Below are positions 1 to 60,857 of a DNA stretch of 64,000 nt, piece by piece. This stretch comes from Mobula birostris (taxonomy: Eukaryota): NCBI RefSeq assembly GCF_030028105.1, contig NC_092384.1, forward strand, positions 3,515,665 through 3,579,664, in the 5' to 3' direction. Made by a program: the position numbers and the translations under genes. The first letter of the stretch is position 1. Each line of letters opens with the position of its first letter. Below the pieces are notes generated by a model. It did not search any database. It saw only the letters and a program-made list of their open reading frames with translations, and was not told where the DNA came from.

Positions 1-280
1 AGGACAAACGTGATCATTGGTGGAAGCGTCACTTTCTACTGTGCTTTCCCACTCCTCCAAGATAACTCAGATCTAAATGTTGTCTGGTGGAAACTAGGGG
101 GAAACAATTTTCTGCAGACTTGGCTGGACAGCAGGAAATATGTCCCTACTTTAAGTAACGGGGAGGCTTCTTTTCAGCTCATAAACGTCAGTGCCGCAGG
201 CACGGGAGTATATTATTTTGGGGTGAAACGTCGAGATCATTCAATAATAAATGGAACTGGGTCAAAACTCGTGGTCCATG
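1..280 (+). CDS. Gene A V-set exon (5' truncated by window edge) with J-like end NGTGSKLVVH
   Basis: Open frame from base 1: GGSVTFYCAFP...VVWWKLGG...ASFQLINVSAAGTGVYYFGV...GTGSKLVVH, phase-1 donor CATG|GTAAG at 281. Gap-free colinear with the gene B V domain. Confidence 0.9.
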
Positions 281-435
281 GTAAGCAGAAATTATTAAAA
301 TTTATACCAAAATAAAGTAAAGAAAGTTCACTTCGAGTTCTCTTATAATAACAACCTAAATTTTATGCAAAAAAAATCTGGTTTCTATTCCCACATAAGT
401 TGTCTGTCTTCTTAGTGTTTCCAGATTTTATTTTT

Positions 436-850
436 TTCTATTCCCTGGAGCGTAGAAGAATGAGGGGAGATTTGATGGAGGTATATAAATTTATGATGGG
501 TATAGATAAAGTGAATGCAAGCAGGCCTTTTCCACTGAGGCAAGGGGAGAAAAAAAAAAACAGAGGACATGGGTTAAGGGTAAGGGGGGAAACGTGTAAA
601 GGGAACATGGGGGCGGTTCTTCACACAGAGAGTGGTGGGTGTATGGAATGAGCTGCCAGACGAGGTGGTAAATGAGTTTTTTTTTAACATTTAAGAATAA
701 ATTGTACAGATACATGGATGAGAAGTGTATAGAGGAATATGGTCCGTGTGCAGGTCAGTGGCACAAGGCAGAAAATGGTTCGGCACAGCCAAGAAGGGCC
801 AAACGGCCTGTTTCTGTGCTGTAGCTTTTTCTATGGTTTTTCTATGGTTT
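436..850 (+). mobile_element. CR1-clade LINE 3' fragment
   Basis: YSLERRRMRGDLMEVYKFM...FFTQRVV-type RT C-terminus followed by a short repeated tail (ttctatggttt)x2. Confidence 0.85.
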
Positions 851-1897
851 ATTGTTTCACTCTGCTGTGTTTTTGATCTGAGAGTTGGAAGCTGAATTGT
901 AAATTCAAAATTGCTACAAATACAATATAGGGTGCGCTATGGCTTCATTTAGGGACATGACTGAAAATTTTTCGCATTCAAATTTGTTTCTGAATCGAAT
1001 CATGAATATTTTTGTCATTCAAATTTAATCTCACTTTTTTGATACTTAGTCTATGGAATAATGGTGGTGTAATAAGATCATGAAAATGACTTTCACCAAA
1101 CCTTTAACAGAAATTCCAAAGAAACACAGTCAAAAGATGATTCGATGTTCTTGGTTAGTAAGAGAGCAGTGTGACCGACAGTTCGATGCTTGTATTTTGT
1201 TATACCAACTGAAGTAATTAATGCTGAGTAATCTTTTTTTTCGCAACTCACAGTAGATGTTGGATTCAAATGACGACAATTTCGGCTGCATTCAAGTGCT
1301 TCAAAATCTACGACTTTCTTATTTACCGGGCATCGTTTAGATTTTCCTTCTTAATATTATAGTTTTCCTCCTGAAACATATCTGCAGCACCTTAAAAAAT
1401 AACTCCCAATCTCCCAAATACCTTTAGCTGTGTGATGAGAATTGCATTTTTCTAATGGCATCAAATATTGTATCTAAACGGATTCTGCCACGGTCATTTC
1501 CAACATTTACTTCATTACTTAAACCTGCCATTTGGCAATCCAAGCCTTCCTCTTGAAAATGCTACAGCTTCTTTGATGTAACCTTGCAGCATCAGAACCA
1601 CCAACTCTCTTAAGTTTGTGATCCCGCCTATAGGTACCATTATTATCTATGTGAGCATTTCAGGGCATTGAAATTAAAATGAAATAATGTCATTAATTTA
1701 TAATTTTCTCACCACCTATAGAAAACAATGTTTATGTCCTGTGCAGATATTAAACAGACAGTCCAGTAATGTTATTGATGTCACAGTCGATGAAATGTAT
1801 ACAATGTCAATTTGCTTTTACCGAAGAAAGATTTAAATTATTCTGCAATTTTGGATAAAAATATCTGTTATGAATAAATATTTAACTTGTTCTGCAG

Positions 1898-2206
1898 TTC
1901 CACCGACCCCATTACGAATTACTTACAATGAAACCAATCATAATGGATCTATCTCCCTTAAAATTGTATGCAAAACTCCTGAATTCTACCCTGATGAGAT
2001 AAATATTACTTGGTGCAAGGATGGTCTGACCGTCGGGAATGGTATAACTACAATAAAAGCGCTAAAATCAAATGGTCTCCATGAAGTTACCAGCATTCTG
2101 GTCGAGGTACAACCTGTCAAGAGCGGGACTATTTACACTTGTCAGGCAAGTCATCCTACAATCAAAACGGCAAAGGAGTTCCAATTTATGTCAACGACTA
2201 CAGGAG
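1898..2206 (+). CDS. Gene A C1-set exon
   Basis: Acceptor ttgttctgcag|, donor GGAG|GTAAAA. VPPTPLRIT...IVCKTPEFYPDEINITWCKDG...YTCQASHPTI; begins with the same VPPTPL(R/K)IT as gene B. Confidence 0.92.
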
Positions 2207-2424
2207 GTAAAAATAGAATTCTGTTAACCATTAGCCACGTTCCTGAAACAAGCGTTTTTTCGAATATTAGGAACACAGTGTCGCACTACTTGTTAGTAAT
2301 AGGCAGAATCTTAAAAATGTTTGCGCCTGTATTGGAAAGGATGGCTGTAATTCAAAAGCGATGAGGCAAAATCAGTTAAAATCTTAATTTGACGAAAAAA
2401 TAAATTTGTGGTGCACTGAAAGGG

Positions 2425-2700
2425 GTATCACGATAGCGTTACCGCAAGCGTAACACTTTTAGAGCGCCAGCTGTAATACTAGAGATCGATTCCCGCCACT
2501 GTCACGAGTTTCCGCGTTTGGCGCGTGACCGCGTGTGTTTCCTCCGGGTCGTATTGTTCCTCATACATTTCATAGGTGCGCTGTGAAAGTTAGTAAGTTC
2601 TGGACATGCTGTTTTGACACCACTTGAGTTGTCCAGCCAGATCTCGCTGATTGAATTTGACGTAAGCTACACATTTCCCTTTATGTTTTCATGCATATGC
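2425..2700 (+). mobile_element. Decayed tRNA-derived SINE (V-SINE/HE1-like)
   Basis: tRNA-like head (gatagcgttaccgc...gatcgattcccgcc) followed by cgtgaccgcgtgtgtttcctccggg, which resembles the V-SINE core as I recall it; not database-checked. Confidence 0.55.
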
Positions 2701-3220
2701 CGCAATCAAAGCTAATTTAGTTACTGGATATGATCTTGGTTAAGATGAATGCCCCGAGGATATCTACCAAAAATCTATTTGTACAGTCATAGGGCAATAT
2801 ACTACCGATGCCCGACGTCTGCTAACCATTCCATGTCGACTACTGAGCTAATTCCGGATTTCTGTTTTTGTTGCCCGCGGTCCCATCCCCTCTGTGTACC
2901 TATTTTACTTGCCTCAGCTATCTACTCTAACAAGTCATTCAATATAGATACCACCCTCCGTGTGAAAAAAAAAGTAATTCAGATTTGTTTTTAAATGTTT
3001 CTCCTATCGTTCTAAAGTGTTGCACCAGAGATTTGGAACTTCTCATCCTGGGGAACAGGTATTTAGTCTGAGGTAATGCCGAATAAAATATCTAACAACT
3101 GTAGACATAATAACAACTTCCGTATATGCACATACCCAAATAAAAGATCAGAAGTGTGACATTATACTTTTCAATCACATTAAAGTTGTTCTACAATAAT
3201 TCGTTACATTTCCTTTGCAG

Positions 3221-3331
3221 AAATTCACCACGCACAATAGTATGTTCAGATTTGTCGGTCGATTGGCGGTGGATTGTTCATTCTATTGCTTGTAATAATC
3301 ATAATACAAAAGCTTGTAAGAAAATACAGAG
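3221..3331 (+). CDS. Gene A transmembrane exon with premature stop: (E)IHHAQ*YVQICRSIGGGLFILLLVIIIIQKLVRKYR
   Basis: Acceptor catttcctttgcag|, donor AGAG|GTGAG, phase 1-1, 111 nt (same length as the gene B TM exon). Hydrophobic run followed by basic residues; TAG at 3238-3240. Confidence 0.85.
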
Positions 3332-4236
3332 GTGAGGAATCATGACATTATAACAAGTTAATTGAAAGCTTTGGTTTTTTTTCAGTGGGCTAAGTGCACT
3401 TCGGGTAAAGTTAGATGAAATTAATGCCAAGGTTGATGCAAGGTTAGCACAGTCCTTGATTACATCCCATATTGCAAGGAAAATATACAGAACATATCAT
3501 TAGATAATTGGCCTGCGTGGTAAAAAAAAAAAAAAAAAAAATGCCGTGCAGTCTCATCACTTCCCTTTTCGCTGCTTTGAACATTTCCTGAATAAATGTA
3601 TTACATCTAGCACTTCGTTAACAGGATATATTTGAACAAGTTTTGACACCATGTGGTTCCGGATATACATTATTTACAGAAATGTGCCGTAAGGAGCCAG
3701 TAACATAATGAGGGATTTCACCCATTCGGCCTATGGATTGTTTGTCCCACTGCCATCGGGAAGAGTCTACGTTGCATCCACGTTAACACCATCATTTTCA
3801 AAAGCAGTTGCTTTCTGCAAATAGTGAGACCGGACCGGCACCTTCATCCACTAATGCACCTCTTCAAACCTCCAACCGTCACAACTTTATTGCAAACTAT
3901 ATTGTATATATTTCTCTAACATTAAATATATCTTTGAAATCTTTGAAACCTTTATGTTTTCCTGTTAGTCACCTTATGTACAGACAGTCCTGTGCCAAGC
4001 GATTTTCTATCGACATACAATCAATCTATCTTATGGACTTATAGTTATTGTGTTGTTATATTATTATAGTGTTCTTTAGCTTATTGCAGTTTTTGTGCTG
4101 CATCGAAGCCACAGTAACAATTGTTCCGTTTTCCATTACACTTGTGTACTGGAAATGACATTAAACGTTCCTGAATCGTGAATCCTAAATTTTGAAACTT
4201 ATAGTCATAAATTCAGCGCCGTGTTATGGCATGTTA

Positions 4237-4244
4237 GTGTGTGT

Positions 4245-4316
<72 letters not shown>

Positions 4317-4330
4317 GAGAGAGAGAGAGA
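4237..4330 (+). repeat. (TG)n microsatellite followed by (AG)n
   Basis: About 39 TG units read directly, then a short GA run. Confidence 0.98.
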
Positions 4331-5344
4331 TAAAGGGGGTGGGGTGGGGGTGTAAGGAGACCGTATAAGATAAAGTGTTCTGCCAGGAGTACTCGGTTGA
4401 AAAAACTTGTCAAAACCACTTCCTCTTCCTTTACTACACTGAGTAAAATGTTCGTGAAGTTAATGCATTATATAAATGCCATCCTTTAATTTTGTCATGC
4501 TGTCGAGAGCAGTGAGCGAGAAGTGAGGCATGGCCGGGGTATTATACGCTGTGCTAAATGCTGAGGATAATATTAGACGCATTAATTACAAATCTAAGAG
4601 CAATTTCTGTTTTTAACATATGGCAGTATTCAGCAAATATCGTACTACAATATTGCTTAAAATATTAATGTAAATATTGCCCATCAGAAATATTATTTCA
4701 TGCTGAAAAACGAATAATTAATTGGATAATTTGGAATTATGATCATAATTATGTATAAGAGATTCGAAAGACAACGCAGTGCATTCTGAAGGTCAGGTAG
4801 GTTCTGTTCTGTTTTTGCTTTGGTAGATTGGTAAATAGATCGAAACAAAGAGAGACGGAAAGGTGGACTCTCGACATAGATATGTAGCCACATATAGTTA
4901 TAAATAAATGTAATTAAACAAATAGTGGACACAAACAACCCGGCATTTACCCTCTATCGTGGAAAATTATTTTGACTGATTATTATTTCCTGCATCCCTT
5001 TCTTGCTTTTTTTCGTCTGTCACTCTTGACATGTCGAAATATTTCATTCTCTGCAATTAGTATATTAAATTGTCTGACCTCTGACACAATTTGTAGCAGA
5101 AAAATCCAGAATTCACTTCTGTCTGGCACATTTTGAATATTTGGTTAATGGTTTCTGATCTTTGATATCTGAAGCCTCAAACAATGTTGTCCCTCTTTCT
5201 CAACTGACTAGCCTACCCTTTTTGCAGTTGGTTATGTAAGTTCTTATTTTTACACAACAGGACATGATTGCTTACACGTGGCCTTTGAAATATACGCCAA
5301 ACTTGCCATCATATCTCTGTAACTGCCACAGTCGGTCAACAATA

Positions 5345-5632
5345 TATTCCTTCTTCGCTTTTCCTGCCTATCACCTCCCTGCTTCCCCTTTCCCACCCAT
5401 TTATCGTTCCCCTTACTGGATTTTCACCTGGAACCTACCAGCCTTCTCCTTCCCACCCTCCTCCCACCTTCTTTATAGGGCCTCTGCCCCTTCCCTCTTC
5501 AGTCCTGATGAAGGGTTCCGGCCCGAAACGTTGACTGATCGTTCCCACAGATGCTGCCCAACCTGCTGAGTTCCTCCAGCGTCCTGTGAGTGTTGCTTTG
5601 AACGCAGCATCTGCAGAGTATTTTGTGTCTCT
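5345..5632 (+). mobile_element. Penelope-associated 3' repeat fragment
   Basis: cctgatgaagggttccggcccgaaacgttgac...agatgctgcccaacctgctgagttcctccagc matches the tail of the Penelope copy at 28460-28580. Confidence 0.7.
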
Positions 5633-5834
5633 AATATCTGAAGACTCAATCAATTCTGTCCCTCTTTTTAATCTGTCTAGTCTGCCCTTTTTGCAGTTAG
5701 ATTTTCAATATTTTTACATACCGGTACATAATTGCTTACATTTGAACTTTGAAATGTACGCCAATCGTCCCATCAGATTTATGTAACTGCCACAGTCGGT
5801 CAACAATAAATACATGTAGCAATATATAAAACAA

Positions 5835-6010
5835 AAGATCTGATCGTTGATTACCGGAGGAACAGAGACAGGCTCAGCTCGATTAACAGCTGAGAGGGTG
5901 AATAGCTTCAAGTTCCTCGGTATATACATCTCTGAAGATCTCAACTGGACTGTACACACCGGCTATGCGGCAAAAAAAAAAAGCAACAACAACAACAAGC
6001 GTCTCTTCCA
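5835..6010 (+). mobile_element. Rex1/Babar-like LINE fragment
   Basis: ERVNSFKFLGIYISEDLNWTVHT motif, shared with the longer copies at 12130 and 20640. Confidence 0.7.
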
Positions 6011-6864
6011 CTTCCAATTGAATCACGATGCTTATATGTTCTAGATCTACTTGCCCGCATTACGCAGTTTGTTTTTTTTTCTCTTCTCCAGCCAATATAA
6101 CCTCCCTACCCTTCTTCTGTCTAAACTCCAGACGACTGAGAACGAATTTGCTAACCTTTATTTATTTTTTTCAGAATCCCAATAAAGCTTTTCAGTTGAA
6201 AATTTAATAACAGATTCTTCCCACTATGTTGACTGCTGTCTTTGAGCTTGCATGCATGTTTTCTTTTTTTTTTTTGAAACAGAATTCTTGTATCGCTCGC
6301 CAATAACGTGCTCGTCTCCAGACTCTGAAGAATTTGAGACATTACGACCAATAAATCCATATTTCAGTTTCCATTTGGGAACTTCGTTTTGGGATGCAAT
6401 TGTCAGGTCCTGGGAATTTGTTGCCCTTTTATCCCCATTAATTTCGAATTTTTATGTCTTTTCGAAAACTGATTTCCTTCAGTCCTTTTTCCTTACATAC
6501 TCATGTCGCAGCTCCGTCTTTTGTGCTGCTTTGCGAAGACTGAATGAATGCAGTGATCGAACTTCCCCTGCATGTTATTTGGCCAAGTATATTCACTACC
6601 TTTATGAATGTAAAGGTACCATATTTGCTGCACTCTTTATAAATTTGCACAGTTTTCAAATGAAAATGTTACATTCCTTGCACGATTGTTTTCATACTCT
6701 AATAAGCATATCAATTTTCATTTCTTTTTTCTGAATTATCAATGCCTATATTCTGCAACCCTTTATTATTTCTGAGAGGCTTATAAACGTTCTCTTTGGA
6801 TCTTATAATTTCTCTTATGTCCGTGGTTGAACATCTTTCTTTACGTAATTTTGTGCAGGACATG

Positions 6865-8250
6865 GAAACCATCGAAACCATATAAAAACTACAGCACGGA
6901 AACTGGCCTTTCGGTCCTTCTTGGCTGTGCCGAACTATTTTCTGCCTAATCTCACTGACTTGCATACGGACCATATCGCTCCATACGCCTCCCATCCATG
7001 TATCTGTCCAATTTATTCCTAAATGCTAAAAAAAAAATTGCGCATTTACTACCTCGTCTGGCAGCTCATTCCATTATCCCACCACTCTCTGTGTGAAGAA
7101 GCCCCCCCCCCCGCACCACAACCACAATGTTCCTTTTAAACTTTTCCCCCCTCACCCTTAATCTCTGTTTTATTCTCCCCTTGCCTCAGTGGAAAAAAAG
7201 CCTGCTTGCAGTCACTCTATCTATACCCTTCATCATTTTATATAACTCTATCAAATCTCCCCTCATTCTTCTACACTCCAGGGAATAAATTCCTAACCTA
7301 TTCAACCTTTCCCTGAAGCCGAGTTTCACAAATCCCGGCAACATCCTTGTAAACCTTCTCTACACTCTTTCAACCTTATTAATAACCATCCTGTAATTTG
7401 GTGACCAAAACTGAACACAATACTCCAGATTCGGCCTCAGCAATGCGTTATGCAACTTCATAATAACATTCCAGCTCTTATACTCAATACTTTCATTAAT
7501 AAAGGCCAATGTACAAAACGCTCTCTTTACGACCCTGTTTACCTGTGCCGTCACTTTTAGGGAATTTTGTATCTGTATTCCCAGATCCCTCTGTTCCACT
7601 GCACTCCTCAGTGCCTTATCATTAACCCTGTATGTTCTACCTTGATTTGTCCTTCCAGACCTCATGCTTGTCTGTATTAAACCCCATCTGCCATTTTTCA
7701 GCTCATTTTTCCAGTTGGTCCAAGACCCTCTGCAGGCTCTGAAAACCTTCCTCACTGTCCACTGCACCTCCAATCTTGGTATCATCAGCAAATTTGCTGA
7801 TACAATTTACCACATTATCATCCAGATCATTGATATAGATGACAAAAAACAATGGACCCAGCACTGATCCCTGTGGCACACCACTAGTCACAGGACTCCA
7901 CTCTGAGAATCAATTCTCTACTACCACTCTTTGGCTTCTTCCATCGAACCAATGTCTAATCCAGCTACCACCTCTCTATGTATACCTAGCGACTGAATTT
8001 TCTGAACTAACCTGCCATGCGGGACCTTGTCAACGACCTTACTGAAGTCCATGAAGACAATATCCACTGCCTTCCCTTCATCCACTTTCCTGGTAACCTC
8101 GTCGAAAAACTCCAGCAGATTGGACAAACATAACCTACCACGCACAAAGCCATGTTGACTCTCCCTAATATGTCCCTGTTCATCCAATTGCTTGCAGATT
8201 CTGTCTCTTAGTATTCCCTTCAATAACTTACCCACTACCGACGTAAGTGC
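6865..8250 (-). mobile_element. CR1-clade LINE, 5'-truncated, RT region plus 3' tail
   Basis: SQHGFVRGRLCLSNLLEFF, MDFSKVVDKVPH, SGVPQGSVLGP, KFADDTK motifs, broken by frameshifts. Confidence 0.92.
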
Positions 8251-8464
8251 TCTCTAACATCGGTGCTTCAACTTCAATTTTTATATATTTTTTTAGATCA
8301 TGCTTTGCCCACCTTTCCAAAAATGCTTTTTCAAAATGTATTCTTTCTTCATGATTTGCTCAATTATTCAGAAGACAAATATTACTGATTAAACTGTGCA
8401 TTATTGCATGTATCTCTAACCAATTGTTAAATTTAATCCACCTTATCGTCTCTACTCTCTGCAG

Positions 8465-8497
8465 AAAACAAAATTTCCCAAAATCACAACTATGAAT
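8465..8497 (+). CDS. Candidate small cytoplasmic exon of gene A
   Basis: Good acceptor (tcgtctctactctctgcag|) but weak donor (AAT|GTAAAC). Reads ENKISQNHNYE in phase 1 or KTKFPKITTMN in phase 0. Confidence 0.35.
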
Positions 8498-9114
8498 GTA
8501 AACAAAAATAAACACTAGTTTTATTTCTATTTAAGAGGAAGTAACCTCTCTGAAACAAAATGACCAGAGACTTTTAAGATGCATAGAGGTTTAGGTGCAC
8601 AGAGTCCGATTCAAAATACAAAACATTTCATGGATGGCGAGCGTCCATAATGATGGATGCCACATTCTTGAAGCAACGCCTTGTGAAGGTGTGCTTTATG
8701 TGTAGCGTTGTGGCCCGAAGGGAAATGATTGTGTGGGCAATCCTTTGCATCCCCTTATGATTCTCCTTATTGATACTCCAGAACAGTTGTAAATGCATGC
8801 CAATATAGTAAGCAGGTTACAGCAATTGCTGTGTTATTTAAATTTCGAAATGGGAAAATACAGCGGAATCATTGGGCATCTGCAAGTCTATGTGACCCAG
8901 TGCGCAAAATTTCACTTAGCACGGTTTAAGAAAGTTATCAAACCAATCGTCTTAAGGATAATACAACTATTGTCATACTGATAAGTTCATGTCATGATTC
9001 TTCCGCTATGTACATACTGCAGTATATAGTTAATGATAGTTACCTGAGCGTCAAGAATAGTGAGGTTGTGATCGAGCAACTGTAATGCATAACTTTAATT
9101 TCCGTTTTATGCAG

Positions 9115-9252
9115 ATATCACTGAACGATAAGGTGCATTATACTACGATAAATGTGACCAAGTCAGTTAAAAGCAAGGAACATCTGCATCAAGGAGAGAT
9201 ACTTGTATACGACAAAGTATATCAAAGACCACTTTCTATGAGTATTCTTTGA
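9115..9252 (+). CDS. Gene A terminal ITIM exon ISLNDKVHYTTINVTKSVKSKEHLHQGEILVYDKVYQRPLSMSIL*
   Basis: Not in the ORF track. Acceptor tttccgttttatgcag|, phase 0 like gene B exon 6. Motifs VHYTTI (9133-9150) and LVYDKV (9202-9219) have the same 23-aa Tyr spacing as gene B. Confidence 0.8.
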   Translation: MSLNDKVHYTTINVTKSVKSKEHLHQGEILVYDKVYQRPLSMSIL

Positions 9253-10949
9253 TCGGAAAGCTAAATTTTTTTGCTAGGTTCTAGCTATTTTCCCAATCTT
9301 TGTTTTGCAGGCAAAACACACGACTAGCATGAATGACTAGCCTGATTCTCTGAAGACAAAGTACTCTGAACGTAATTTCAGGAGTGCGGATATGCAAAAG
9401 TGCACATGAAACACAGGTCTAGGATATTTATTAAGAAAGCAGTTAACGGGACACCTGCGGAGAGGTCACCACAATTGTTCAGTTTCCTCCCTTAACTTAT
9501 GGGTTTGAACCGGCCTTCCTCTTGCTCTGATCTTGTAACTATCATTTTTTAACATCTCAATCCTCCTTTGCGACTGAATTAACCAGAACAATTATTTTTT
9601 TTCTGACATTTTTCCAATAATATCAAATATAGTCCATGACACCAAAAGATATAGGTGCCGCTTTACGCCATTTCGCCCATCTAGCCTGCACTGCCATTTC
9701 ATCATGGCAGATCCAATTTTGAATGGATAATTAAAGGAACACAGTACAAAAGGAATGCATTCCTTTAGTAATGAAATACCTAACGAGCTGGGGACACTGA
9801 ATGCTGCAAGAACTGAAAGGACAAACTGGCTTTTTCGACTTTACATCAAATTTCGAGTTACTCCTTATTCTAATTGCTTCACCATACCCGTATGCTATAG
9901 CCAAAAGTGGCGAGACTAAATTAAAATCAGTATTTGTCTGCATTGAAAATGGCTGATTCATGAAACAAAAATGCAAGCGTAGGAACATTCTGCGTTTGGT
10001 TCAAATTACCATAGATCACCAAATGTTGTCATCTAAGATTAAACAAAACTGCCCCAATGTGCTCTCTTCTGCAGAAAACAAAATTATGTGATCAAGCAGT
10101 TTGCTGATTTTAGACCATGAACTTGGACCAGTTTGTAATTTTTCCGTCAGTGCTTTCAAATCCATGCCAATTGGCCCGGTGACTTTACAAATTGCTCTGT
10201 AATACATTAAAACGTGAAACTGTACACCGCCCATAACTTCATATAGTAACATCATAATTGCAGACGTTTGTTGAGAATTTTTCGAGCACCCTTCAAAGAT
10301 GACGTACAGATTTTGTATTTCTGCCCCCTTCAGCATGAGGTGTGAAGTCTAATGCTATTAATGGCAGTATTCACAGATAACAGGTAACAGACAATAAGGA
10401 ACTAAGGAGAGGTTCACGATATTTTTACTGTACCCTTTTTCCACATTGTTTTTGAGACCAGCAACAGTGCTGTCAATCTCAAATTTAAAGATAGCCTTGT
10501 CCTGTACCTGGACCCAGAGTCATGGGTGTAATAGGGTTACAGCAGGGGATATACAGTCATTGGTGTAATAAGGTTAGAGGACTCTCCAGGAGGCGCTCAT
10601 GGCGTGAGGTACAGATCGCATTCTCTCCATTCCCTTTACTTCTTTTACCTGTAACCACCTTTATTTACTTTATCTATACCTGCACTAAAGGGTTTATACC
10701 ACAAATAGATCTTTGAACTTCGATTTTAACTTACTGAAAATGCTGACCAGAGAGCATAAAGTTCAAAGTGGGAAAGACTCCGGCGAGAACGGGAAAAGAA
10801 AAAGATAGCGATCCCCAAACATCTAAGCATATTCCATTAACAACGAAACAATGTCAAAACTTCTAGAGGATACACTTAACTAAAGATTTGCTCTGTTTGA
10901 AGACGTTTTGAAGACCATTCAATATGATGTTAAATCATATCTTAAATCT

Positions 10950-16185: not shown

Positions 16186-16189
16186 TTTC

Positions 16190-17225: not shown

Positions 17226-17354
17226 AGTACAAAGTTTGCATGTACCTGTCAGAATAAAGAAAAAGCAAACAGGTTTACGGACCATTTTGTTATCGAGAAA
17301 GATATGAAGCCTGGCTTAAAATAAGAAATAATTAAATAACAAATATTGCACGGA

Positions 17355-20130: not shown

Positions 20131-20182
20131 AGTTCTTGATTCGCCAGATAGCAAGCATCGAATGTAAGAGAATCGTATCAAA

Positions 20183-20349
20183 NNNNNNNNNNNNNNNNNN
20201 NNNNNNNNNNNNNNNNNNNNNNNNNNNNNNNNNNNNNNNNNNNNNNNNNNNNNNNNNNNNNNNNNNNNNNNNNNNNNNNNNNNNNNNNNNNNNNNNNNNN
20301 NNNNNNNNNNNNNNNNNNNNNNNNNNNNNNNNNNNNNNNNNNNNNNNNN
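20183..20349. other. Assembly gap (167 N)
   Basis: Run of N. Confidence 1.
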
Positions 20350-36920: not shown

Positions 36921-36974
36921 CCATAAGACATAGGAGCAGAATTGGACCACAAATCGCCCAAGACATGAAATGGA

Positions 36975-40631: not shown

Positions 40632-40799
40632 TCAATAGCTATATGTTGCTGTTTTCGTTTCCATATTTCTCGCCTCTTCCTTTATCTTTATTCCAGCATA
40701 CTCGATCTCATGAGTCTTCTGCACTCTTCCTGCGTTTTTCTGAGAAGCGGCGAGATCCACACGTGCATACATAAGTGTATCTTCAGTTCCTTGCATGAT
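40632..40799 (-). CDS. Gene B exon 6, terminal ITIM exon IMQGTEDTLMYARVDLAASQKNAGRVQKTHEIEYAGIKIKEEARNMETKTATYSY*
   Basis: Not in the ORF track. Acceptor tgattgtttccatag|, phase 0. Motifs LMYARV (40775-40758) and IEYAGI (40706-40689) fit the ITIM consensus (I/V/L/S)xYxx(L/V/I). It lies in a non-repetitive island between TEs. Confidence 0.85.
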   Translation of the reverse strand: MMQGTEDTLMYARVDLAASQKNAGRVQKTHEIEYAGIKIKEEARNMETKTATYSY

Positions 40800-43700
40800 C
40801 TATGGAAACAATCATTAGAGATAAGGAGCTTCTGATCCACTATTTTTGAAACCTAATTTAGTCCAAAAGACCAAAAGACAAAGGAGCAGAAGTCGGCCAT
40901 ACGGCCCATCGAGTCTGCTCCGCCATTTTATCATAGCTGACCGATTCTCCCATTGAGTCCCATTCCCCCGCCTTCTCACCATTGATGCCCTGGCTACTCA
41001 CATACCTATCAATCTCTGCCTTAAATACACCCAATGCCTTGGCTTCCACTGTTGCCCAAGGCAACAAATTCCATAGATTCACCACCCTCTGACTAAAAAA
41101 AAAATTCGCATCTCTGTTCTGAATGGGCGCCCTTCAATCCTTAAGTCATGCCCTCTCGTACTAGACTCCCCCATCATGGGAAACATCTTTGCCACATCCA
41201 CTCTGGCCATGCCTTTCAACATTCGAAATGCTTCAATGAGGTCTCCCCTCATCCTTCTAAACTCCAAGGAATACAGTCCAAGAGCGGACAAACATTCCTC
41301 ATATGTTAACCCTCTCATGCCAGGAATCATTCTACTGAATCTTCTCTGTACCCTCTCCAACGTCAGCACATCCTATCTTAAATAAGGAGACCAGAACTGC
41401 CAACAGTGATCCAAGTGAGGTCTCATCACCGCCTTATAGAGCCTCGCATCACATCCCTGCTCCTATACTCTATTCCTCTGGAAATGCATGCCAACATTGC
41501 ATTCGCCTTCTTCACCACTGACTCAACCTGGAGGTTACCCTTAAGGGTATCCTTTACGAGGATGCCCAAGTCCCGTTGCATCTCCGAATGTTCAATTCTT
41601 TCCCCACTTAATTAATAGTGTACCCGTTTTTTTTTTCTGCCAAAGTGCATAACCATACACTTTCCAACACTGTATTTCATTTAGCACGTCTTTGCCCATT
41701 CTTCCAATCTATCCAAGTGTCACTGCAGACTCCCCGTTTCCTCGGCAGTTCCGGCCCCTCCACCTATCTTCGTATCGTCAGCAAACTTAGCCAGAAAACC
41801 ATTTATTCCATAATCCAAATCGTTGATATACAATATAAAAAGAAACGGCCCCAACTCAGACCCCTGTGGAACACCACTGGTAATCGGCAGCCAACCAGAC
41901 CAACCAGAATAGGATCCCTTTATTCCCACTCTCTGTTTCCTGCCAATCAGACAACGCTCTATCCAACGTATGTAAATTTCCCGTAATTCCATGCGCGCTT
42001 TTCTTGTTAAGTAGCCTCATGTGTGGCACCTTGTCAAAGGCCTTCTGAAAATCCAAATATACAACATCTACTGCATCTCCCTTGTCTAGCCTACTGGGAA
42101 TTTCCTCAAAAAAATTGTAATAGGTTTGTCAGGCAGGCTTTTCCTTTAAGGAATCCATGCTGAGTTCTGCCTATCTTGTCATATGCCTCCAGGTACTCTG
42201 TAACCTCATCCTTGACAATCGACTCCAACAACTTCCCAACCACAGATGTCAAGCGAACAGGTCTATAATTTCCATTTTGCTTCCTTACCCGATTCTTGAA
42301 TAGCGGAGTGACATTTGCAGTCTTCCAGTCCTCCGGAACCATGCCGGAATCGATTGACTTTTGATAGATCAACGCTAATACCTCCGCAATCTCCACAGTT
42401 ACTTAAGAACACGAGGGTGTATTCCATCTTGTCTGGAAAATTTATCTAGCTTTGGACTATTCAGCTTCATGAGTACTTTCTCTGTCGTAATTGTGACTGC
42501 GCACACTTTTCTTCCCTGCGACCCTTGAGGGTCCAGTATGGTGCTGATGCATTCCTCAGTGAAGACTGATGCAAAATACTCGTTCAGTTCCTCCGCCATC
42601 TCCTTAACTCCGATTACAATTTCTCCAGCATCATTTTCCATCGGTCTTATATCTACTCTCACCCGTCTTTTGCTCTTTATATACTTGAAAAACCCTTTAG
42701 TATCCTCTTTTGATATTATTTGCTAACTTCCTTTCTTAGTAAATCTTTTCCCTCTTAATGACCTTCTTAGTTTCATAGAAACATAGAAAATAGGTGCAGG
42801 AGTAGGCCATTCGGCCCTTCGACCCTCACCGCCATTTATTATGATCATGGCTGATCATCCAACTCAGAACTCTGCTCCAGCTTTCCCTCCATACCCCCCA
42901 TCCCCGTAGCCACAAGGGCCATATCTAACTCCCTCTTAAATATAGCCAATGAACTGGCCTCAACTGTTTCCTTTGGCAGGTCACCCAGGTCTCCTTGCAC
43001 CTCCCCTTTTCCTAATCGGCCACCATTCAGATAATAATCTGTTTTCCTATTTTTGCCACCAAAGTGGATAACTTCACATTTATCCACATTAAATTGCATC
43101 TGCCATGAATTTGCCCATTCACCCAACCTATCCAAGTCACTCTGCATCCTCTTAGCATCCTCCTCACAGCTAACACTGCCACCCAGCTTCGTGTCATCCG
43201 CAAACTTGGAGATGCTGCATTTAATTCCCTCATCCAAGTCATTAATATATATTGTAAACAACTGGGGTCCCAGCACTGAGCCTTGCGGTACCCCACTAGT
43301 CACCGCCTGCCATTCTGAAAAGGTCCCGTTTATTCCCACTCTTTGCTTCCTGTCTGCTAACCAATTCTCTATCCGCATCAATACCTTACCCCCAATACCG
43401 TGTGCTTTAAGTTTGCACACTAATCTCCTGTGTGGGACCTTGTCAAAAGCCTTTTGAAAATCCAAATATACCACATCCACTGGTTCCCCCCTTCCACTCT
43501 ACTAGTTACATCCTCAAAAAATTCCATGAGATTCGTCAGACATGATTTTCCTTTCACAAATCCATGTTGACTTTGTCCGATGATTTCACCGCTTTCCAAA
43601 TGTGCTGTTATCACATCTTTGATAACTGACTCCAGCAGTTTCCCCACCACCGACGTCAGGCTAACCGATCTATAATTCCCCGGTTTCTCTCTCGCTCCTT

Positions 43701-46700
43701 TTTTAAAAAGTGGGGTTACATTAGCCACCCTCCAATCCTCAGGAACTAGTCCAGAATCTAACGACTTTTGAAAAATTATCACTAATGCATCCACTATTCC
43801 TTGGGCTACTTCCTTAAGCACTCTGGGATGCAGACCATCTGGCCCTGGGGATTTATCTGCCTTTAATCCCTTCAATTTACCTAACAGCACTTCCCTACTA
43901 ACATGTATTTCGCTCAGTTCCTCCATCTCACTGGACCCTCTGTCCCCTACTATTTCTGGAAGATTATTTATGTCCTCCTTAGTGAAGACAGAACCAAAGT
44001 AATTAGTCAATTAGTCTGCCATGTCCTTGCTCCCCATAATCAATTCACCTGTTTCTGTCTGTATGGGACCTACATTTGTCTTTACTAGTCTTTTCCTTTT
44101 TACATATCTATAATAGCTTTTACAGTCAGTTTTTATGTTCCCTGCCAGTTTTCTCTCATAATTTTTTTCCCCTTCCTAATTAAGCCCTTTGTCCTCCTCT
44201 GCTGAACTCTGAATTACTCCCAGTCCTCAGGTGAGCCACTTTTTCTGGCGAATTTGTATGCTTCTTCTTTCCTTTTGTAAGGTTTTAGAAACTTCCCAAT
44301 CCTCTGTCTTCCCACTAACTTTTGCTTCCTTGTATGCCCTCTCCTTTGCTTTAACTTTGGCTTTGACTTCTCTTGTCAACCACGGCTGAATCCTTTTTCC
44401 ATTCGAAAATTTATTCTTTTTTGGAATATACCCGTCTTGTACCTCCCTCACTTCTCGCATAAACTCCAGCCACCGCTGCTCTGCCGTCTTTTCCGCCAGT
44501 CTCCCTTTCCAGTCAACTTTGACCATTTCCTCTCTCATGCCACTGTAATTTCCTTTACACCACTGAAATACCGACACATCAGATTTCGGCTTCTCTTTTT
44601 CAAATTTCACAGTGAATTCAATCATGTTATGATCACTGCCTCCTATGGGTTCCTTCACCTCAATCTCTCTAATCACCCCCGGTTCATTACACAATACCCA
44701 ATCCAGTACCACCGATCCCCTTGTGGGCTCAACAACAAGCTCTTCTAAAAAGCCATCTCGCAGATATTCTACAAATTCTCTCTTGAGATCCAATGGCGAC
44801 CTGATTTTCTGAATCCATTCGCATCTTAAAATGCTCCACAATTATCATAACACCGCCCTTCTGACAAGCCTTGTCTATTTCTTGTTGTAATTTGTAGTCC
44901 ACATGACTGCAGCTGTTTGGAGGCCTATAAATAACTGCCCTCAGGCTCCTTTTACCCCTGCGATTTCTTAGCTCAACACATAAAGATTCTTCACCTTCCG
45001 ATCCTATATCACCTGTTTCTAATGATTTAATTTCATTTTTACCAAAAAAGCCACGCCTCCCCCTCTGCCTACCTTCCTATTCTTCCAATACACCGTGTAT
45101 CCTTGGACGTTCAGCTGCCAGAGACATGCATCCTTTAGCCACGTCTCATTGATGGCCACAGTATCATACTTGCCAATCTGTAGCTGTACAACAAGATCAT
45201 CCACCTTATTCCTTATGCTGCGTGTATTTAAGTATAACAGCTTAAGACCAGTATTTGGTACTTTTCGCTTTGATTTCACTGCAACTTTATTGCATTGTAA
45301 ATCATCCCAATGGTTACAAATTTGCCCCATCACATGCCTGTCTTTCCTGAGATATTTACTGCTCGTTATCTGAGATTTAGTTCTGTTTTCCCCTTCCTCC
45401 ACTCTGTCATTCCGTTTCCCATCCCCCTGCGAAATTAGTGTAAACCCTCCCTAACAACTCTGTTAAACTTACCCGGCAGGATATTGGTCCCCTTCGGGTT
45501 CAGGTGTTACCTGTCCTTTTTGAACAGGTCATACTTCCCCCATAAGAGGTCCCAATTATCCAAGAATCTGAAGCCCTGCCCCCTGCCCCAGTCTCTCAGC
45601 CACGCATTCATCTGCCAGATCCCACTATTCTTGGCCTCGCTAGCACGTGGCACAGTTAGCAATCCCGATATTGCTGGGGCAAGTTTTGAGTAGTCAAGGT
45701 ATTTATAAAGTTTTAAAATTTGCATCACCTGGCCTTTCCAAACGATGATTGTGAACAGGCCATAGCCCTAACAAGCTAATTAAGGTATGAGACTTGGTAA
45801 AAATAATCTAAAAGCTCAAATCTCTTGGGGTGCCCAAATTTTGCATGGTTCTCCTTTCCTTTTTTTCAATCTAAAATTGTACAAAACAAAAATAATACTC
45901 TTAACTTGCTTACAATGTAGAAAAGAATGTTTCATATTTAACTTTAGGACTTTTGGAGATCAGTTCATCTTCTACTCACTTAACTATACGCAGTAACAGA
46001 AATTTTGGCCGGGGTGCTGAAACCTTCGCATACCACTGCACTAGCTACTGTCCTAAACTTTATTTTGTTAGGACGAATGCCCAATTAGAAAATGACGGGC
46101 CTCAGGTAAAATGATTCACGCAGGACCGGTCTGATTAATTAAAATATCAAATGCAGTATCTTGGGGAGCTTAAGGAATTCCTGAATAAGACCAGAAGACC
46201 ATAATACATAGGAGCAGAATTAAGCCATATGGCCCATCGAGTTTGCTCTGCCATTCAACCATGCCTAATACTTTATTTTCTTCTCCTCAACTCCAGTTCC
46301 CGACATCTTCTCGTCATCTTTAATGCTATGTTCAATCAGAGCCTATCTGTCTCTGCCTTAATTACACCCAATGAATTGGCCTACACAGCGATATGTGGCA
46401 TCAAATTCCACAAATTCACAACTTTTTGTTTAAAAAAAAAGTCTCTGCATCTCTGCTTTGAAAGGGCGCCCCTCTTTCCTGAGCCTCTGCTATCTTGTCC
46501 GAGATTCTCCGACCATGGAAAACATCCTTTCCAAAGCTACCCTCTCTAGGTCATTCAACATTCGAAAGGGTTCAATGAGATCCCCCTCAGCCGTTTGAAT
46601 TCCAGCAAGTGCATATGCGGAGCCATCAACCTTTCCTTGTGTGATACAGCTTTCATTCCTGGAATCGTCCTTGTGAAACTCCTCTGAATAAATAAATCGC

Positions 46701-49700
46701 TGAAGATGCTGCACTACATAAGTCAAAGATACAGAACAAAAATGAGCACTGCTTTTCTGGAACATAAGGTGTTATATGCAAAGTGACAGTCATTCTGTTG
46801 CTCTAATTATGTGCTCCTGATAATGGGTGTATGTACAACATATGCTGCGGATATTCTACGAGTCTGTGGTGTCCAGTGCTATCATCTGTTGCTGTTGTGC
46901 GCTGGGGCAGCTGGCTGCGGGTAGCAGACACCAACAGAATCAAGAAACTCATTCGTAAGGCCAGTGATGTTGTGGGGATGGAACTGGACTCTCTCACGGT
47001 GGTGTCTGAAAGCAGGATGCTGTCTAAGTTGCATACCATCTTGGTCAATGTCTCCTATTCACTACATAATGTACTGGATGGGCACAGGAGTACATTCAGC
47101 CAGTGACTCATTCCACCGAGATGCAGCACTGAGCGTCATAGGAAGTCATTCCTGCCTGTGGCCAGCAAAATTTACAACTCCTCCCTTGGAGGGTCAGACA
47201 CCCTGAGCCAATAGGCTGGTCCTGGACTTATTTCTTAATTTACTGGCATAAATTACATATTACTGTTTAACTATTTATGGGTCCATTACTATTTATTATT
47301 TATGGTGCAACTGTAACGAAAACCAATTTCCCCCGGGATCAATAAAGTATGACTATGACTATATATAAACCCCTATATATGTCATAATAATATTAATCTT
47401 ACCTGATTTTCCAGGTAGCGACTTAAGTTCTCATCATTTTCGGCTACAACTGGAGGAAATAAAAAGTGACCAATTTCATCCTCAGCTTGTGAACTGCTGC
47501 ACCGAATGTTATTGAATATTCCAAAAGCAACCAGATCGGTTCGAAATAGGCCAGTGATCTGATGCAATTCTTGTCATTTTATCAAACCACCCAATGATGA
47601 TATTACTGATGATAAAAATTGACCTAGTGTATGCGTAGAATTGTTCAAACTATGTTCTCCTGCGCAACAAACATTCTAAATTTGTAACACTAGTTGCAGA
47701 GTTAACAATATTTTTTTTAGTTGTTACAAAATTCAGTAACATCGAGTAAAATGCGTTTTAAATCTTGTTCTGCACACAACACTCAGCTGTCAGATAGACT
47801 CTCAAGCATATCTACTCAAACCTATATTTTAACATGAATGTTTTATCCTTCTCACTGCCATTTCAACTCCAATATGCTCGTGAAACTAAATATGGGCCAG
47901 GGCAATGTAACGTCTTACCTTCAGTCCTGTCTACTCTGCAGCATCTGATAAGTAACAACAGCGCTAGGATAATGACTCCGCATGCTGCAAGCGCACCCGT
48001 CAGGATCAAGATGAACTGGTATCTGCTTTCTGAGGTGTGCAATAGAAGTCAAATATTAGCATTTTACGGAGATTAAACAATTGAATCACGTGTACTGCGG
48101 ACGTAAAGAATCCGATCCGTACTTTCTCTCGCATCTTGACCACATTGCCTTCGTAGTAAATCGCAAATTGAAATAAAACGTGGATTATGCGTAGGGCATT
48201 AATAAGTAATTATATCAATATTTAATCCAGCTTATTTTCATCAGTAATTCTGTATTCTTGAGGAAGTTGATAAGGCATGGATTGAAGCGAGGGCTGGCAA
48301 ACATACACAAGCGAACTCAGGTCAAAGAATATGATGATGCAAAACGGAATTTCTAGGTCGAGTTGTGAATTGTGCCGGCAAAATTTAGCAGATACGAACT
48401 CTGATATAATAGGCAGGCAGGCTAATATAAGGTGTAGCAGCTTGGTGTGCAGAATTAGGGATATCAATATGTTGTTTTAAACCAGATGAAGGGAAAAGCA
48501 GCTTACATTTATTTATAGTATCATGTCAGGGCAGGTTGCGAAGATGCTAGTAAGGCTTATGCCATTCGTCGGCACAAATGTGGAATCTGAAAGAAGTGAA
48601 GTCATGCCGCATTTTTATTGAACTATGGTCTGGGATATTGTGATATTGTGTTCAATTAGAGTAAGATTGTGACGCGTTAGAGAGGATCCACGAAAGTCTA
48701 TTTCTGTTAGAGATGCTGTCGAAACTGCATGCATTCTTCACTTTGCTCAGTCGTGGAGAAGATAACTGAAGACTCACACACACCGATTATGAAACATTCT
48801 GTTTCTTTACGGGAACATTTTTGTACTACTGATTTATATATGTAACTTATAGTAGGTCGATGACTGCATTGTACTGCTGTCAAACAACAACAAATTTCAG
48901 GTCATGCAATTCAGTGATCAGAAAATTCGGTGAATCTGATCGTGCAAAGTGGAGATCAGATAAAATTACATAAGAGGGCAAGTCTGCATTGCTGATAACA
49001 AGGATTTAGAAAGACAGGATCTGCAAAAGTCAAGGAGTTACGCCATTTATTTTTGCATATTATTCCTTGAAGCAGGAAACAGCAGCAGTATAATATGATA
49101 TCTAACTCTTCTTTGTATAGCCAATGCCTTACATTTCGCTTTCCCCCTTTGAATATGCTCGCTTCATCACTGTTTGTGAGGAATTGATAAATACCAGACA
49201 TAAAACATGTGGTTAAGAATATAAGCCTCTTACCCAATATGATTCTATATGACTCGGAAGCTGGCTCCTTCATAGATTCATGGAACACCTGGCAAGTATA
49301 AACATACCCACTTTCTGTTACATTGAGGGAGCTTGAAACGAGATATAATCCCTCCTCGTTCTGCATTCGTGTGGTATGCATTCCTGAAGTGATTTTGATT
49401 TCATTTTTATACCATATGAGCTCATAGTCCTTCGGGAAAAAAGCAGCAGTTGTGCACGTCAGAGTCACGGAAGGAGCGTTTACTTCGGTGATTTTCAACG
49501 GAGTCGGCGGAACTGCAAATGATTAAAAAAAAGAAGAGAGCTAGAATCTCTAAGCGCGCATTTATCAGAGAAAATAATCGCCGACAGAAAAGTACTCTTC
49601 ACAACCGGGAACGTTAATCTGAATTTAATTTGAAAACATTAATCCCAAATCAAGCAGGTTAAACATTTCTGCATGACGTTTTATGCAGCGATATACATTT

Positions 49701-58700: not shown

Positions 58701-60857
58701 AGGTCTTCAGAAACAGCAGGAGGAGGGATCATAAATCAATCCTCAAATTGGGAGAGAGAAGGCAATTTCAAGTTCCTGGGTGTCAATATCTCTGGGGAAC
58801 GAACCTGGCCCTAACAAATCGACGTTGCTATAATGTGGGCAAGTTAGTGGCTATATTTTTTTGGAAGTTTGAGGAGATTTGGTTTGTCACCTAAGACCCT
58901 CGGAAACGTCTAGGGATGTACCAGAAGAGCATTTTGACAGGTTGCATCACCGTCTGGCATGCTGGGGAGCGACTACTGTACCAGATCGAAAGAAGCTACA
59001 GTAAGTTATAAATGAGTTAGTTCTATCATGGGTGCTAGCATCCATAGTATCCAAGACATCTTCAAGGAGCAGTGTCTCTGGAGGACTGCCTTCATCATTA
59101 AGGACTTCCATTACCCAAGACATGTCCTCTTCTCATTATAACCCTAAGGAAGGAGGTGTGAAAGCGTGAAGACACACACTCAGCGATTCAAAGAAATCTT
59201 TCTTCCTCTCTGCTATCCGATCTCTCATGGATAATGAACCTATAAACACTACCTTACTGACATCAGCACTGGACTCCAAGGCCGGATTGTTCTGAGTTCA
59301 AACTCAGCCGGGTCCCAGCCTGGACAGCAGCAGTGTCTGCAGAGAACAAATGCCCGGCCATCTACTTTCATATCTGCCATGAATACCCTGTATACCCTTT
59401 GGTCCACGATGTCACGAAGAGTCGGACTCGACTTAAGGACTTAACAACTGAACAACAACTTTAAATGATTTTGCTGATTTTCTCTTTTTCCTATATTATT
59501 AGGTTGTATTTGCTTTATATTGTACTGCTGCCGGTACGTTAATAAATTTCACGACGTATCCCGTCGATGATTTTAGTCCTGATTCTGATTCTGATTATAA
59601 GTTAATTCTGTTTAGAAGTTCTCCATTCGCTAAATAGACATAACAAACATTTATTTATTTTTTTTTTCCATTTGCAAAGTGACAGACAGACTCGAGTTTA
59701 CAAATGAACTATTCTCGGGCTTTCCTAATGATGCCAGAGTATGCAACCGAGACATCGGTTGCAATTGATATTTGTACCCGGCTGGAAACCCGAGAAGCGG
59801 TTATTTGTTATATATGCTGACAAAACATTAGAACTTTTTCCAGAATCGTTTTGATATTCTGCAGGTAATCGCTGAATTCTTAACTTACGAAGGCCACGAC
59901 ATCATCTGTAACTCACAGGTCTACAATCGGATGAAATAATTTCAGTTAACACATGTAATATTCTATTTCAGTAATTGCCTAGCTACGGACTTAAAATCCT
60001 TCATTAGATATACATCCCAGAATTAAATTTCCAGATAAAAAAGGAGCATAATTTTTTTTTGAAATTAGAAAGCAATGTTCTTTCGGAGATTACACTGTTC
60101 CACCAACAGTAAACGGTGGTTATTCAAACCCGAAAGGAAGAATACTATTGTGGATAGTGTGGCAGTCCCTTGTTCTACTTTATCAATATATAACGCGCTC
60201 CGTTAAATGTAGTCGTTGCATTTGTCTAAGACACGCCGAGTGAGACTTACCGTGTACAATAACGTTCGTGCCACTGCCTTGGGAAAATTTTCTTGTCCAG
60301 TCTCTCACACTGCAATAATAGATTCCAGAGTCACCGAAGCTCACCCCGAGGATATGGAGTTCGGCAGAACCTTGCTCTGAAGTTATAATACTCATCCTTC
60401 TCTCTGCAGTGGCATCTATAAATTGTTTTTGTCCCCCTTTCCTCCAATAAGCATCCACCAGTGAGTTATGAGCGAAGATTGGGTAGGTGCAGTAAATTGA
60501 CACATTTTCACCCTCTGCCTTCGTCACCTGCTCAGGAATCTGGTTCACTGTGAACGAGGCCCTGCCAGCAACTGTCAGAATGAAAAACATTCGTTATCAG
60601 AGCATAATGATCGGCATTATTGACCAGAAAAAAAAACATATACTGTTACTGTAAACGAAAAAAGGTCAATTTCCTTGTGATTGAAGTAAATCAATTGTAA
60701 ATATCTAAACTGCGATTTACTAATCGAGCAAAAAGTACCTCATGAAGATATTCCCTGCCCCCACTCCGTTATTCAGCATTAACGAGAGAAGCGTATACAT
60801 ACCAGTGTAAGTAATCTGCAGGACTAAGATATACTGCAGCAAAGTAAATATTTGCAT
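40632..60857 (-). CDS. Gene B: complete 6-exon VJ-C1-TM-2xITIM inhibitory Ig-superfamily receptor (SIRP/NITR-like), 326 aa; join(60857..60803, 60571..60251, 49512..49234, 48029..47919, 47449..47403, 40799..40632)
   Basis: Manual splicing. All five introns are GT-AG with compatible phases (1,1,1,1,0). Exon lengths 55+321+279+111+47+168 = 981 nt = 326 codons plus TGA, with no internal stop. Domain order is leader, V, C1, TM, cytoplasmic tail with two ITIMs. Confidence 0.88.
40858..42775 (-). mobile_element. CR1 LINE RT and 3' end (gene B intron 5)
   Basis: NYRPVRLTSVVGK, DFQKAFDKVPH, GVPQGSELGP, KFADDTK, YSLEFRRMRGDL. Confidence 0.92.
42777..45660 (-). mobile_element. Young composite CR1 LINE (ORF1 esterase end, EN, RT with internal deletion, 3' tail)
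   Basis: Long open ORFs 42845-43480, 43420-44010 and 44227-44841; RT jumps from GEVQGDLG directly to LPKETVEASS; tail catagaaacatagaaa. Confidence 0.92.
45665..45860. mobile_element. Possible Tc1/mariner remnant
   Basis: ggggtgcccaaattttgca resembles Tc1 terminal repeats as I recall them; no partner TIR found. Confidence 0.3.
46830..47362 (+). mobile_element. Rex1-like LINE 3' end with (TATGAC)n tail
   Basis: ADTNRIKKLIRKASDVVG...STFSQ; aataaagtatgactatgactat. Confidence 0.82.
47403..47449 (-). CDS. Gene B exon 5, short cytoplasmic exon (V)VAENDENLSRYLENQ
   Basis: Strong polypyrimidine acceptor ctttttatttcctccag| and donor CAG|GTAAG. It is 47 nt and gives exactly the phase 1 to 0 change needed to join the TM exon to the ITIM exon. 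Confidence 0.8.
47919..48029 (-). CDS. Gene B exon 4, transmembrane exon (E)SRYQFILILTGALAACGVIILALLLLIRCCRVDRTE
   Basis: Not in the ORF track. Acceptor cttctattgcacacctcag|, donor GAAG|GTAAGA, phase 1-1, 111 nt. About 23 hydrophobic residues with no charge, followed by RCCR. Confidence 0.9.
49234..49512 (-). CDS. Gene B exon 3, Ig C1-set domain
   Basis: Acceptor tttttttaatcatttgcag|, donor TTGG|GTAAG. VPPTPLKIT...VTLTCTTAAFFPKDYELIWYKN...GLYLVSSSLNV...YTCQVFHESM carries the C1 hallmarks C-x4-F-x-P, W, and YTCxVxH. Confidence 0.95.
52444..56082 (-). mobile_element. Nested CR1-in-CR1: host copy at 52444-53000 and 55822-56082, inserted copy at about 53001-55820
   Basis: Host reading frame breaks at YCVQFW (52998) and resumes at 55822. 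The insert carries EN, RT and its own 3' tail, including a 309-aa ORF at 53069-53998. Confidence 0.88.
58330..59598 (+). mobile_element. Old Rex1-like LINE RT and 3' end with (ATTCTG)n tail
   Basis: TGASLECALSPLIYSLY, KFGNDTTIVG; cctgattctgattctgatt tail. Confidence 0.75.
59258..59459 (+). mobile_element. tRNA-derived SINE with RTE-type 3' tail
   Basis: B-box-like gagttcaaactc at about 59297; tail gtcacgaagagtcggactcgactt...gaacaacaac. Confidence 0.6.
60251..60571 (-). CDS. Gene B exon 2, Ig V-set domain with J-like G strand
   Basis: Acceptor ttttcattctgacag|, donor CACG|GTAAGT. Sequence FTVNQIPEQVTKAEGENVSIYC...YWRK...LHILGVSFGDSGIYYCSVRDWTRKFSQGSGTNVIVH has the canonical Cys, Trp, DxGxYxC and GxGT motifs. 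Confidence 0.95.
60803..60857 (-). CDS. Gene B exon 1, signal peptide MQIFTLLQYILVLQITYT
   Basis: ATG at 60857, hydrophobic 18-aa stretch, phase-1 donor ACTG|GTATGT, 231 nt upstream of the V exon acceptor. Confidence 0.8.

Follow-up and report, generated by a model that had tools for sequence, protein, structure and literature searches.

Two neighbouring non-rearranging receptor genes of the ray Mobula birostris, one intact and probably inhibitory and one broken, in a multigene cluster

Among described systems, the closest architecture to that of the ray genes reported here is that of PRARP as described: both are pairs of genes encoding a VJ domain, a C1 domain, a transmembrane (TM) region, and a tail with an immunoreceptor tyrosine-based inhibitory motif (ITIM). 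PRARP genes were reportedly described by Fu and colleagues in 2019, from chicken and other non-mammalian bony vertebrates, as two linked paralogues with a non-rearranging VJ, a C1 domain, a TM region, and an ITIM tail. The UrIg and UrIg2 genes of elasmobranchs are likewise non-rearranging, with VJ in a single exon ahead of C1; the UrIg proteins have the layout V-C1-C2-C3, and the text of the report mentions no ITIM (PMC12227049). Activating receptor forms are known to arise from inhibitory ones (PMC2213150). Literature searches for a chondrichthyan V(J)-C1-TM-ITIM family found nothing specific, and that family, with many members in sharks, rays, and chimaeras, is represented only by automatically predicted genes. 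Here we describe two of its members, designated gene A and gene B, in a 64,000-nt stretch of contig NC_092384.1 of Mobula birostris. This whole stretch is called the window, and all coordinates are positions within it. We put at roughly 80% the probability that the window holds two neighbouring non-rearranging receptor genes of a cartilaginous fish, B an intact inhibitory gene and A a broken one, in a cluster with gene turnover.

Gene B spans 60857-40632 on the minus strand and has six exons, with GT-AG borders at every intron. The joined exons form a 981-nt open reading frame (ORF) of 326 amino acids, encoding a leader, a V domain fused to a J-like motif, a single C1 domain, a TM span, and a tail with two tyrosine motifs. 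The leader exon (60803-60857) has its ATG at 60857. The V exon (60251-60571; 321 nt, phase 1-1) carries the fused J-like motif GSGTNVIVH and matches the Pfam V-set at 6e-11, and the C1-set exon (49234-49512; 279 nt) starts VPPTPLKIT and matches the Pfam C1-set at 9.5e-14. The TM exon (47919-48029; 111 nt, phase 1-1) encodes a membrane span without a charged residue. A first cytoplasmic exon, cyt1 (47403-47449; 47 nt, phase 1 to 0), precedes the last exon (40632-40799; phase 0), which encodes LMYARV (Y282) and IEYAGI (Y305) and then a stop. The orthologue in Mobula hypostoma, XP_062923423 (P0006, also 326 amino acids), matches all exons at 84-93% (V 93%, TM 84%, last exon 91%). The paralogues P0005, P0008, and P0009 carry an extra 35-residue exon with SPSYADL; P0006 is without it, and a hidden Markov model (HMM) search found no trace of this middle cytoplasmic exon in the window.

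Gene A lies on the plus strand and runs from before position 1 to 9252, its leader and the start of its V domain falling outside the window. The V(J) exon (1-280), cut at its 5' part by the window start, ends in phase 1 at a GT donor. It is followed by a C1-set exon (1898-2206; 309 nt, phase 1-1) that starts VPPTPLRIT and matches the Pfam C1-set at 7.6e-10, and by a TM exon (3221-3331; 111 nt, phase 1-1). These three match M. hypostoma XP_062923424 (P0014) at 88, 88, and 83%, respectively. The cyt1 exon (4762-4796) leads from phase 1 to 0, and the last exon (9115-9252; phase 0) encodes VHYTTI and LVYDKV, 23 residues apart, and then a stop. This last exon is missing from the P0014 model. The cyt1 and last exons of isoform X1 of the orthologue from the stingray Hemitrygon akajei (P0046), however, align to window positions 4758-4799 and 9112-9210 at 70%. 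Because of this match, we take the ITIM exon at 9115-9252 to be real, and gene A shares the six-exon plan of gene B and its phases 1,1,1,1,0.

The original prediction, made from the letters of the window, was of a pair of paralogous receptors with a gap-free V alignment, a common VPPTPL(R/K)IT start of C1, identical 111-nt TM exons, the same intron phases, and the same ITIM spacing. The V domains of A and B do align without gaps, at about 30% identity, and both C1 exons, about 31% identical, open with VPPTPL(R/K)IT. The phases agree throughout, and the tail tyrosines lie 69 nt (23 residues) apart in both genes (A 9139/9208, B 40769/40700). The TM exons match in length but not in sequence: without gaps, 42/111 nt and 7/37 residues are shared, and blastn between the two gave no match. 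The observation as a whole thus stands for exon models, phases, and spacing, fails for TM sequence identity, and for its layout hangs on a scaffold join that is discussed below. The tyrosine spacing of 23 residues recurs in P0005, P0015, P0025, P0028, P0035, and P0036. Both genes have a single-exon V with a fused J-like motif and one C1-set exon starting VPPxPL, and P110, P112, and the G-x-G positions hardly vary across 32 family sequences.

A family tree of 36 rows, with the window genes entered as winA and winB, splits into a B clade of 17 rows (100/100) and a second clade of 19 rows (100/100). Since both of these subfamilies hold sharks and rays, the duplication that separated A from B is older than the split between sharks and rays. 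The A orthogroup (99/98), inside the second clade, consists of winA and sequences from M. hypostoma, Hemitrygon, Pristis, and Heptranchias. Terminal pairs are winB with P0006 (99/97) and winA with P0014 (100/96). The pairing of P0009 with P0008, and the grouping of P0005 with P0040 and P0001, imply that at least three B-type genes were present in the ancestor of Mobula; with two paralogues annotated in M. birostris, gene B makes a third B-type gene of Mobula. The two genes are thus genuine paralogues within one V(J)-C1-TM-ITIM family, each in a deeply separated subfamily. In a comparison of the seven Mobula ectodomains of B type, V regions are 22-56% variable and C1 is 29% variable; this variability is evenly spread and not concentrated in loops like complementarity-determining regions, so that loop-focused diversification is unsupported in this set.

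Gene A carries lesions that its relatives lack. Codon 217-219 reads TTT and encodes Phe in place of the second canonical V cysteine of the orthologues, and 3238-3240 in the TM exon is an in-frame TAG, located before the membrane span, where the orthologous proteins of M. hypostoma (P0014) and H. akajei (P0018) have Trp. Apart from this one TAG, the joined frame is open from V to the last exon. Where the stingray would place the cyt1 acceptor, gene A reads AT instead of AG, although the frame is preserved by an AG 9 nt downstream. Beyond the second tail tyrosine, gene A diverges from H. akajei, and the old C-terminus lies out of frame at 9296-9361. About 88 nt, within 9211-9361, separate the second Tyr codon from this remnant of the ancestral C-terminus (AKHTTSMN...SLKTK), and no internal duplication was detected in that interval. 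Contigs of M. birostris DNA match 1-466, 795-2635, and 2904-3299 with 0 differences, and the lesions are therefore not slips of the assembly. Position 218 is T in this DNA; a sister organism, about 4-6% diverged, has G there, giving Cys, in its DNA and RNA contigs alike. The claim that one member of the pair is functional and the other decaying also fits, in that the ORF of B is intact and that A has both a Cys-to-Phe change and an in-frame stop absent in the sister species.

RNA from the sister organism also shows how gene A is used there. One contig joins 279 to 1897 and so crosses the V-C1 splice; depth is zero in introns 1 and 2, and coverage is continuous over 3302-3714, so that a read-through 3' end at 3332-3714 follows the TM exon. 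The sister species thus mainly expresses a form of gene A whose final exon is the extended TM exon, which accounts for the short tail of the P0014 model. In M. birostris, an RNA-like run gave no coverage of any gene A exon, and a protein search returned no A-type protein from this species. The terminal branch of winA is 0.12, versus 0.051 for its orthologue. We read gene A in M. birostris as a young pseudogene or null allele.

Two further features were seen in and beyond the TM exon of gene A. Positions 3611-3708 on the plus strand are the counterpart of an alternative last exon in isoform X2 of the H. akajei A-type gene, which has a YxxM-type motif (YTEM); in the window there is a TAA near its start and Phe replaces the Tyr of the motif, and the RNA contigs of the sister organism read straight through it. 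The membrane span of gene A contains an Arg (ICRSIGGG) that is Gly in the stingray (ICGSIGGG), and the M. hypostoma protein has a second, deeper Arg (LLLIRIII). The membrane anchor of gene A has thus been changing in the Mobula lineage.

RefSeq already predicts members of this family, under the automatic names SIRP-alpha-like, tapasin-related-like, and lambda light chain-like, and these make it possible to place A and B in a chromosomal context. Additional M. birostris members, XP_072135197, 199, 230, and 231, are located on one 86.2-Mb chromosome. In M. hypostoma there are at least nine family loci on one 80.6-Mb chromosome, with accession endings 413/414 (Arg in TM, short tail), 415/416, 417-422, 423 (the B orthologue), and 424 (the A orthologue); further members on the same chromosome end in 465, 618, and 619. 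In H. akajei, B-type genes have endings 657-659 and A-type genes 661-662. Gene order is read here from consecutive RefSeq accessions, as RefSeq practice would imply. Species of Hemitrygon, Heptranchias, Heterodontus, Chiloscyllium, Pristis, Scyliorhinus, Mustelus, and Callorhinchus have A-like and B-clade genes, or several members, on one contig. In a search of 1.84 billion proteins, 20/20 of the nearest relatives sampled were chondrichthyan, including the chimaera Callorhinchus. The consecutive accessions in M. hypostoma, and the one shared chromosome in each sampled species, support the proposal that the pair belongs to a chromosome-level multigene cluster. That proposal had been open to refutation by a lack of further copies or by a tree placing A and B in unrelated families; additional copies exist on the same chromosome, and the two fall in one family tree.

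A member with a charged TM span and no ITIM, a form that the original prediction proposed to look for, exists in M. hypostoma (P0001); none was found within the window, where an HMM of the activating-type TM exon gave nothing significant. P0001 (Arg in TM, short tail) and P0040 (ITIM tail) have near-identical ectodomains, belong to the same 90% cluster, and are encoded at neighbouring loci, so that inhibitory and activating members with closely similar ectodomains occur in one cluster in M. hypostoma. The activating-type proteins P0001, P0003, P0016, P0020, and P0029-P0034, drawn from both deep clades, have a conserved TM exon with the pattern xR(I/F)(L/I)LG...II(V/A)(D/E)HLK, in which an Arg is near the outer end and an acidic residue or Asn, together with His, near the inner end. 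This pattern may loosely resemble the TM region of T-cell receptor (TCR) alpha.

Family members combine a single V domain of light-chain type, which includes its own J motif, with a single C1 domain, a membrane anchor, and a tail that carries tyrosine motifs. An AlphaFold model of a B-type ectodomain has a predicted local distance difference test score (pLDDT) of 88, and its best PDB matches are antibody light chains at E of about 1e-16. In gene B, the V domain would bind a ligand, and Src-family kinases would phosphorylate both tail tyrosines. Phosphorylated, the two tyrosines, 23 residues apart, could act as a pair to bind the tandem SH2 domains of SHP-1 or SHP-2, and this binding would damp cell activation. 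Both SHP recruitment and inhibitory function are suggested by the motifs, read through what is established for receptors with ITIM and immunoreceptor tyrosine-based switch motifs (ITSM). The spacing agrees with tandem-SH2 docking of SHP-1 or SHP-2, known from PECAM-1, PD-1, and SIRP-alpha, and so does the combination of an ITIM with an ITSM-like motif, which in most paralogues reads TEYAGI. Relatives with Arg in the TM span would presumably pair with an adaptor carrying an ITAM (immunoreceptor tyrosine-based activation motif). Gene A belongs to a second, anciently diverged subfamily, having lost its second V cysteine and gained a stop before the membrane span. The cluster as a whole would evolve as genes duplicate, turn into activating forms with Arg in the TM span and a short tail, or are lost.

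Gene A could be modified and not dead: its product might be a V-C1 protein that is secreted or lacks the TM span, with either an end at the TAG or a skipped TM exon, or the stop might be a polymorphism in the animal that was sequenced. A frame open except for a single TAG is in keeping with this, and the TM exon is symmetric (phase 1-1), so that skipping it would bypass the stop; a TM-less isoform is in fact annotated in a shark relative, Heterodontus (P0013). The lesions, moreover, were seen in the DNA of one individual, and the run that confirms them is probably from the assembly's own sample, with a private or heterozygous allele possible. These points weigh against our reading of a broken A beside an intact B, as do three that concern gene B: direct expression evidence was not found, one RNA-like run holding only 5% of the words of its C1-TM-cyt1 stretch; no protein identical to the gene B product was found in the protein collection; and the terminal branch of winB is 0.059, versus 0.027 for its orthologue. 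Gene A, however, has lost a structural V cysteine too, its cyt1 acceptor and the end of its last exon are altered as well, and its exons lack RNA coverage in the M. birostris run, with no A-type M. birostris protein returned. We consider a modified but living gene A unlikely.

It is highly improbable that A-type and B-type chains make up one heterodimeric receptor, after the manner of TCR alpha/beta or of the PRARP pair in chicken, with adjacency kept for co-expression. The ectodomain is light-chain-like, and A-type and B-type accessions are neighbours in M. hypostoma (423, 424) and H. akajei (657-659, 661-662) and share one chromosome in sharks, but adjacent duplicates are the default expectation for such families. 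In addition, B is intact while A is broken in the M. birostris genome, at least three B-type genes face a single A found in Mobula, and a membrane-proximal cysteine pair is absent. A broader version holds that A and B stay neighbours because their chains cooperate, as a heterodimer or as matched receptors, in a chondrichthyan paired-receptor system not described before; Mobula A would first have been remodelled towards an activating-like form, with Arg in its TM span and a transcript that ends after the TM exon, and would later have been lost on the manta lineage. This seems to us quite unlikely. A different doubt concerns the map. The window contains one run of N, an assembly gap at 20183-20349 between the genes, 10.9 kb past the stop of A and 20.3 kb past the stop of B. 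Gene A is on its left, on the plus strand, and gene B on its right, on the minus strand. The prediction of a tail-to-tail pair about 31 kb apart agrees with the assembly, in which the stop codons are 31.4 kb apart, but because the genes are on opposite sides of the gap, both this spacing and the convergent orientation rest on the scaffold join. The left flank reaches to about 100 nt short of the 3' end of a long interspersed nuclear element (LINE), as judged against a fuller copy at 40.9-45.5 kb, and such an end is a typical break point; the right flank has no nucleotide similarity to these LINE copies, and the flanks are not collinear. No tandem repeat was found at the gap edges. With a LINE end on one side and unrelated sequence on the other, continuity across 20183-20349 is not demonstrable. 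The convergent layout could therefore be a scaffolding artefact, with contigs that are not adjacent or one of them inverted. Against this, the orthologue accessions are consecutive on one M. hypostoma chromosome and nearly so in H. akajei, which fits adjacency and is silent on orientation; an artefact seems very unlikely. Neither gene has an exon or reading frame close to the gap.

The G+C content of the window is 42% and its CpG observed/expected ratio 0.58, and its best protein matches are to Mobula rays. The family HMM, run against all six frames, matched only the exons of A and B, and no third family member was found in the window. A leader-like match at 32842-32774 was rejected as a chance match, as no V domain continues from it. 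LINE debris, with endonuclease and reverse-transcriptase ORFs, is abundant across the window. Two pairs of LINE segments in opposite orientation, 43487-44063 with 63327-63903 and 43391-43492 with 63899-64000, are 96% identical, which indicates that this LINE family was active recently; one of the two copies sits in the last intron of gene B. Between the genes, 22773-24909 and 39394-39975 have long ORFs on both strands that are low in complexity, rich in Ser, Pro, and Gly, and without a Pfam match; this sequence is probably an unclassified repeat. Segments 25691-25827 and 39928-40064, 14 kb apart, are 80% complementary.

What the window provides is an exon-by-exon record of one probably inhibitory and one freshly broken member of this family. 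It captures a dated gene death inside a cluster, gene A being intact in M. hypostoma and broken in M. birostris, and it shows the A/B split to be older than the divergence of sharks and rays. This is the ordinary turnover of receptor gene clusters, and no new kind of system is revealed.

Among known systems, the ray genes resemble UrIg in belonging to elasmobranchs, in not rearranging, and in the single-exon VJ followed by C1 (PMC12227049). UrIg2 (9dmx) was among the top PDB sequence matches, at 5e-15 to 8e-14, no better than ordinary antibody chains. Antibody chains came first in both sequence and fold searches of the PDB, with SIRP-alpha (2wng, 2.4e-14) among many matches, and in these searches SIRP is not distinguished from antibody or TCR chains. 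Language-model neighbours of the family include SIRP-alpha clusters, and the automatic RefSeq name of many ray members is 'tyrosine-protein phosphatase non-receptor type substrate 1-like'. The likeness to SIRP extends to a V domain with a J-like GxGTxLxV motif in one exon, a C1-set domain, paired tyrosine motifs for SHP-1/2, clustered genes, and sister genes with a charged TM span and short tail, as with activating SIRP-beta and inhibitory SIRP-alpha in mammals. The ray genes differ, however, in having one C1 exon between V and TM, in A, B, and all orthologue models, where SIRP has two C1 domains, and one tyrosine motif pair, with a third motif in some paralogues, where SIRP has four tyrosines. 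By their predicted exons, then, they lack the V-C1-C1 structure of SIRP proper. With KIR, LILR, NITR, and CD300 they have in common multigene clusters, inhibitory members with ITIM and activating members with a charged TM span, pseudogenes, and fast ectodomain divergence. KIR and LILR are, however, built of C2/I-type domains, NITR of V plus I, and CD300 of V only, and these families are analogues of the ray genes, not homologues. By analogy, the ray genes may work like paired receptors of the SIRP, KIR, or LILR type.

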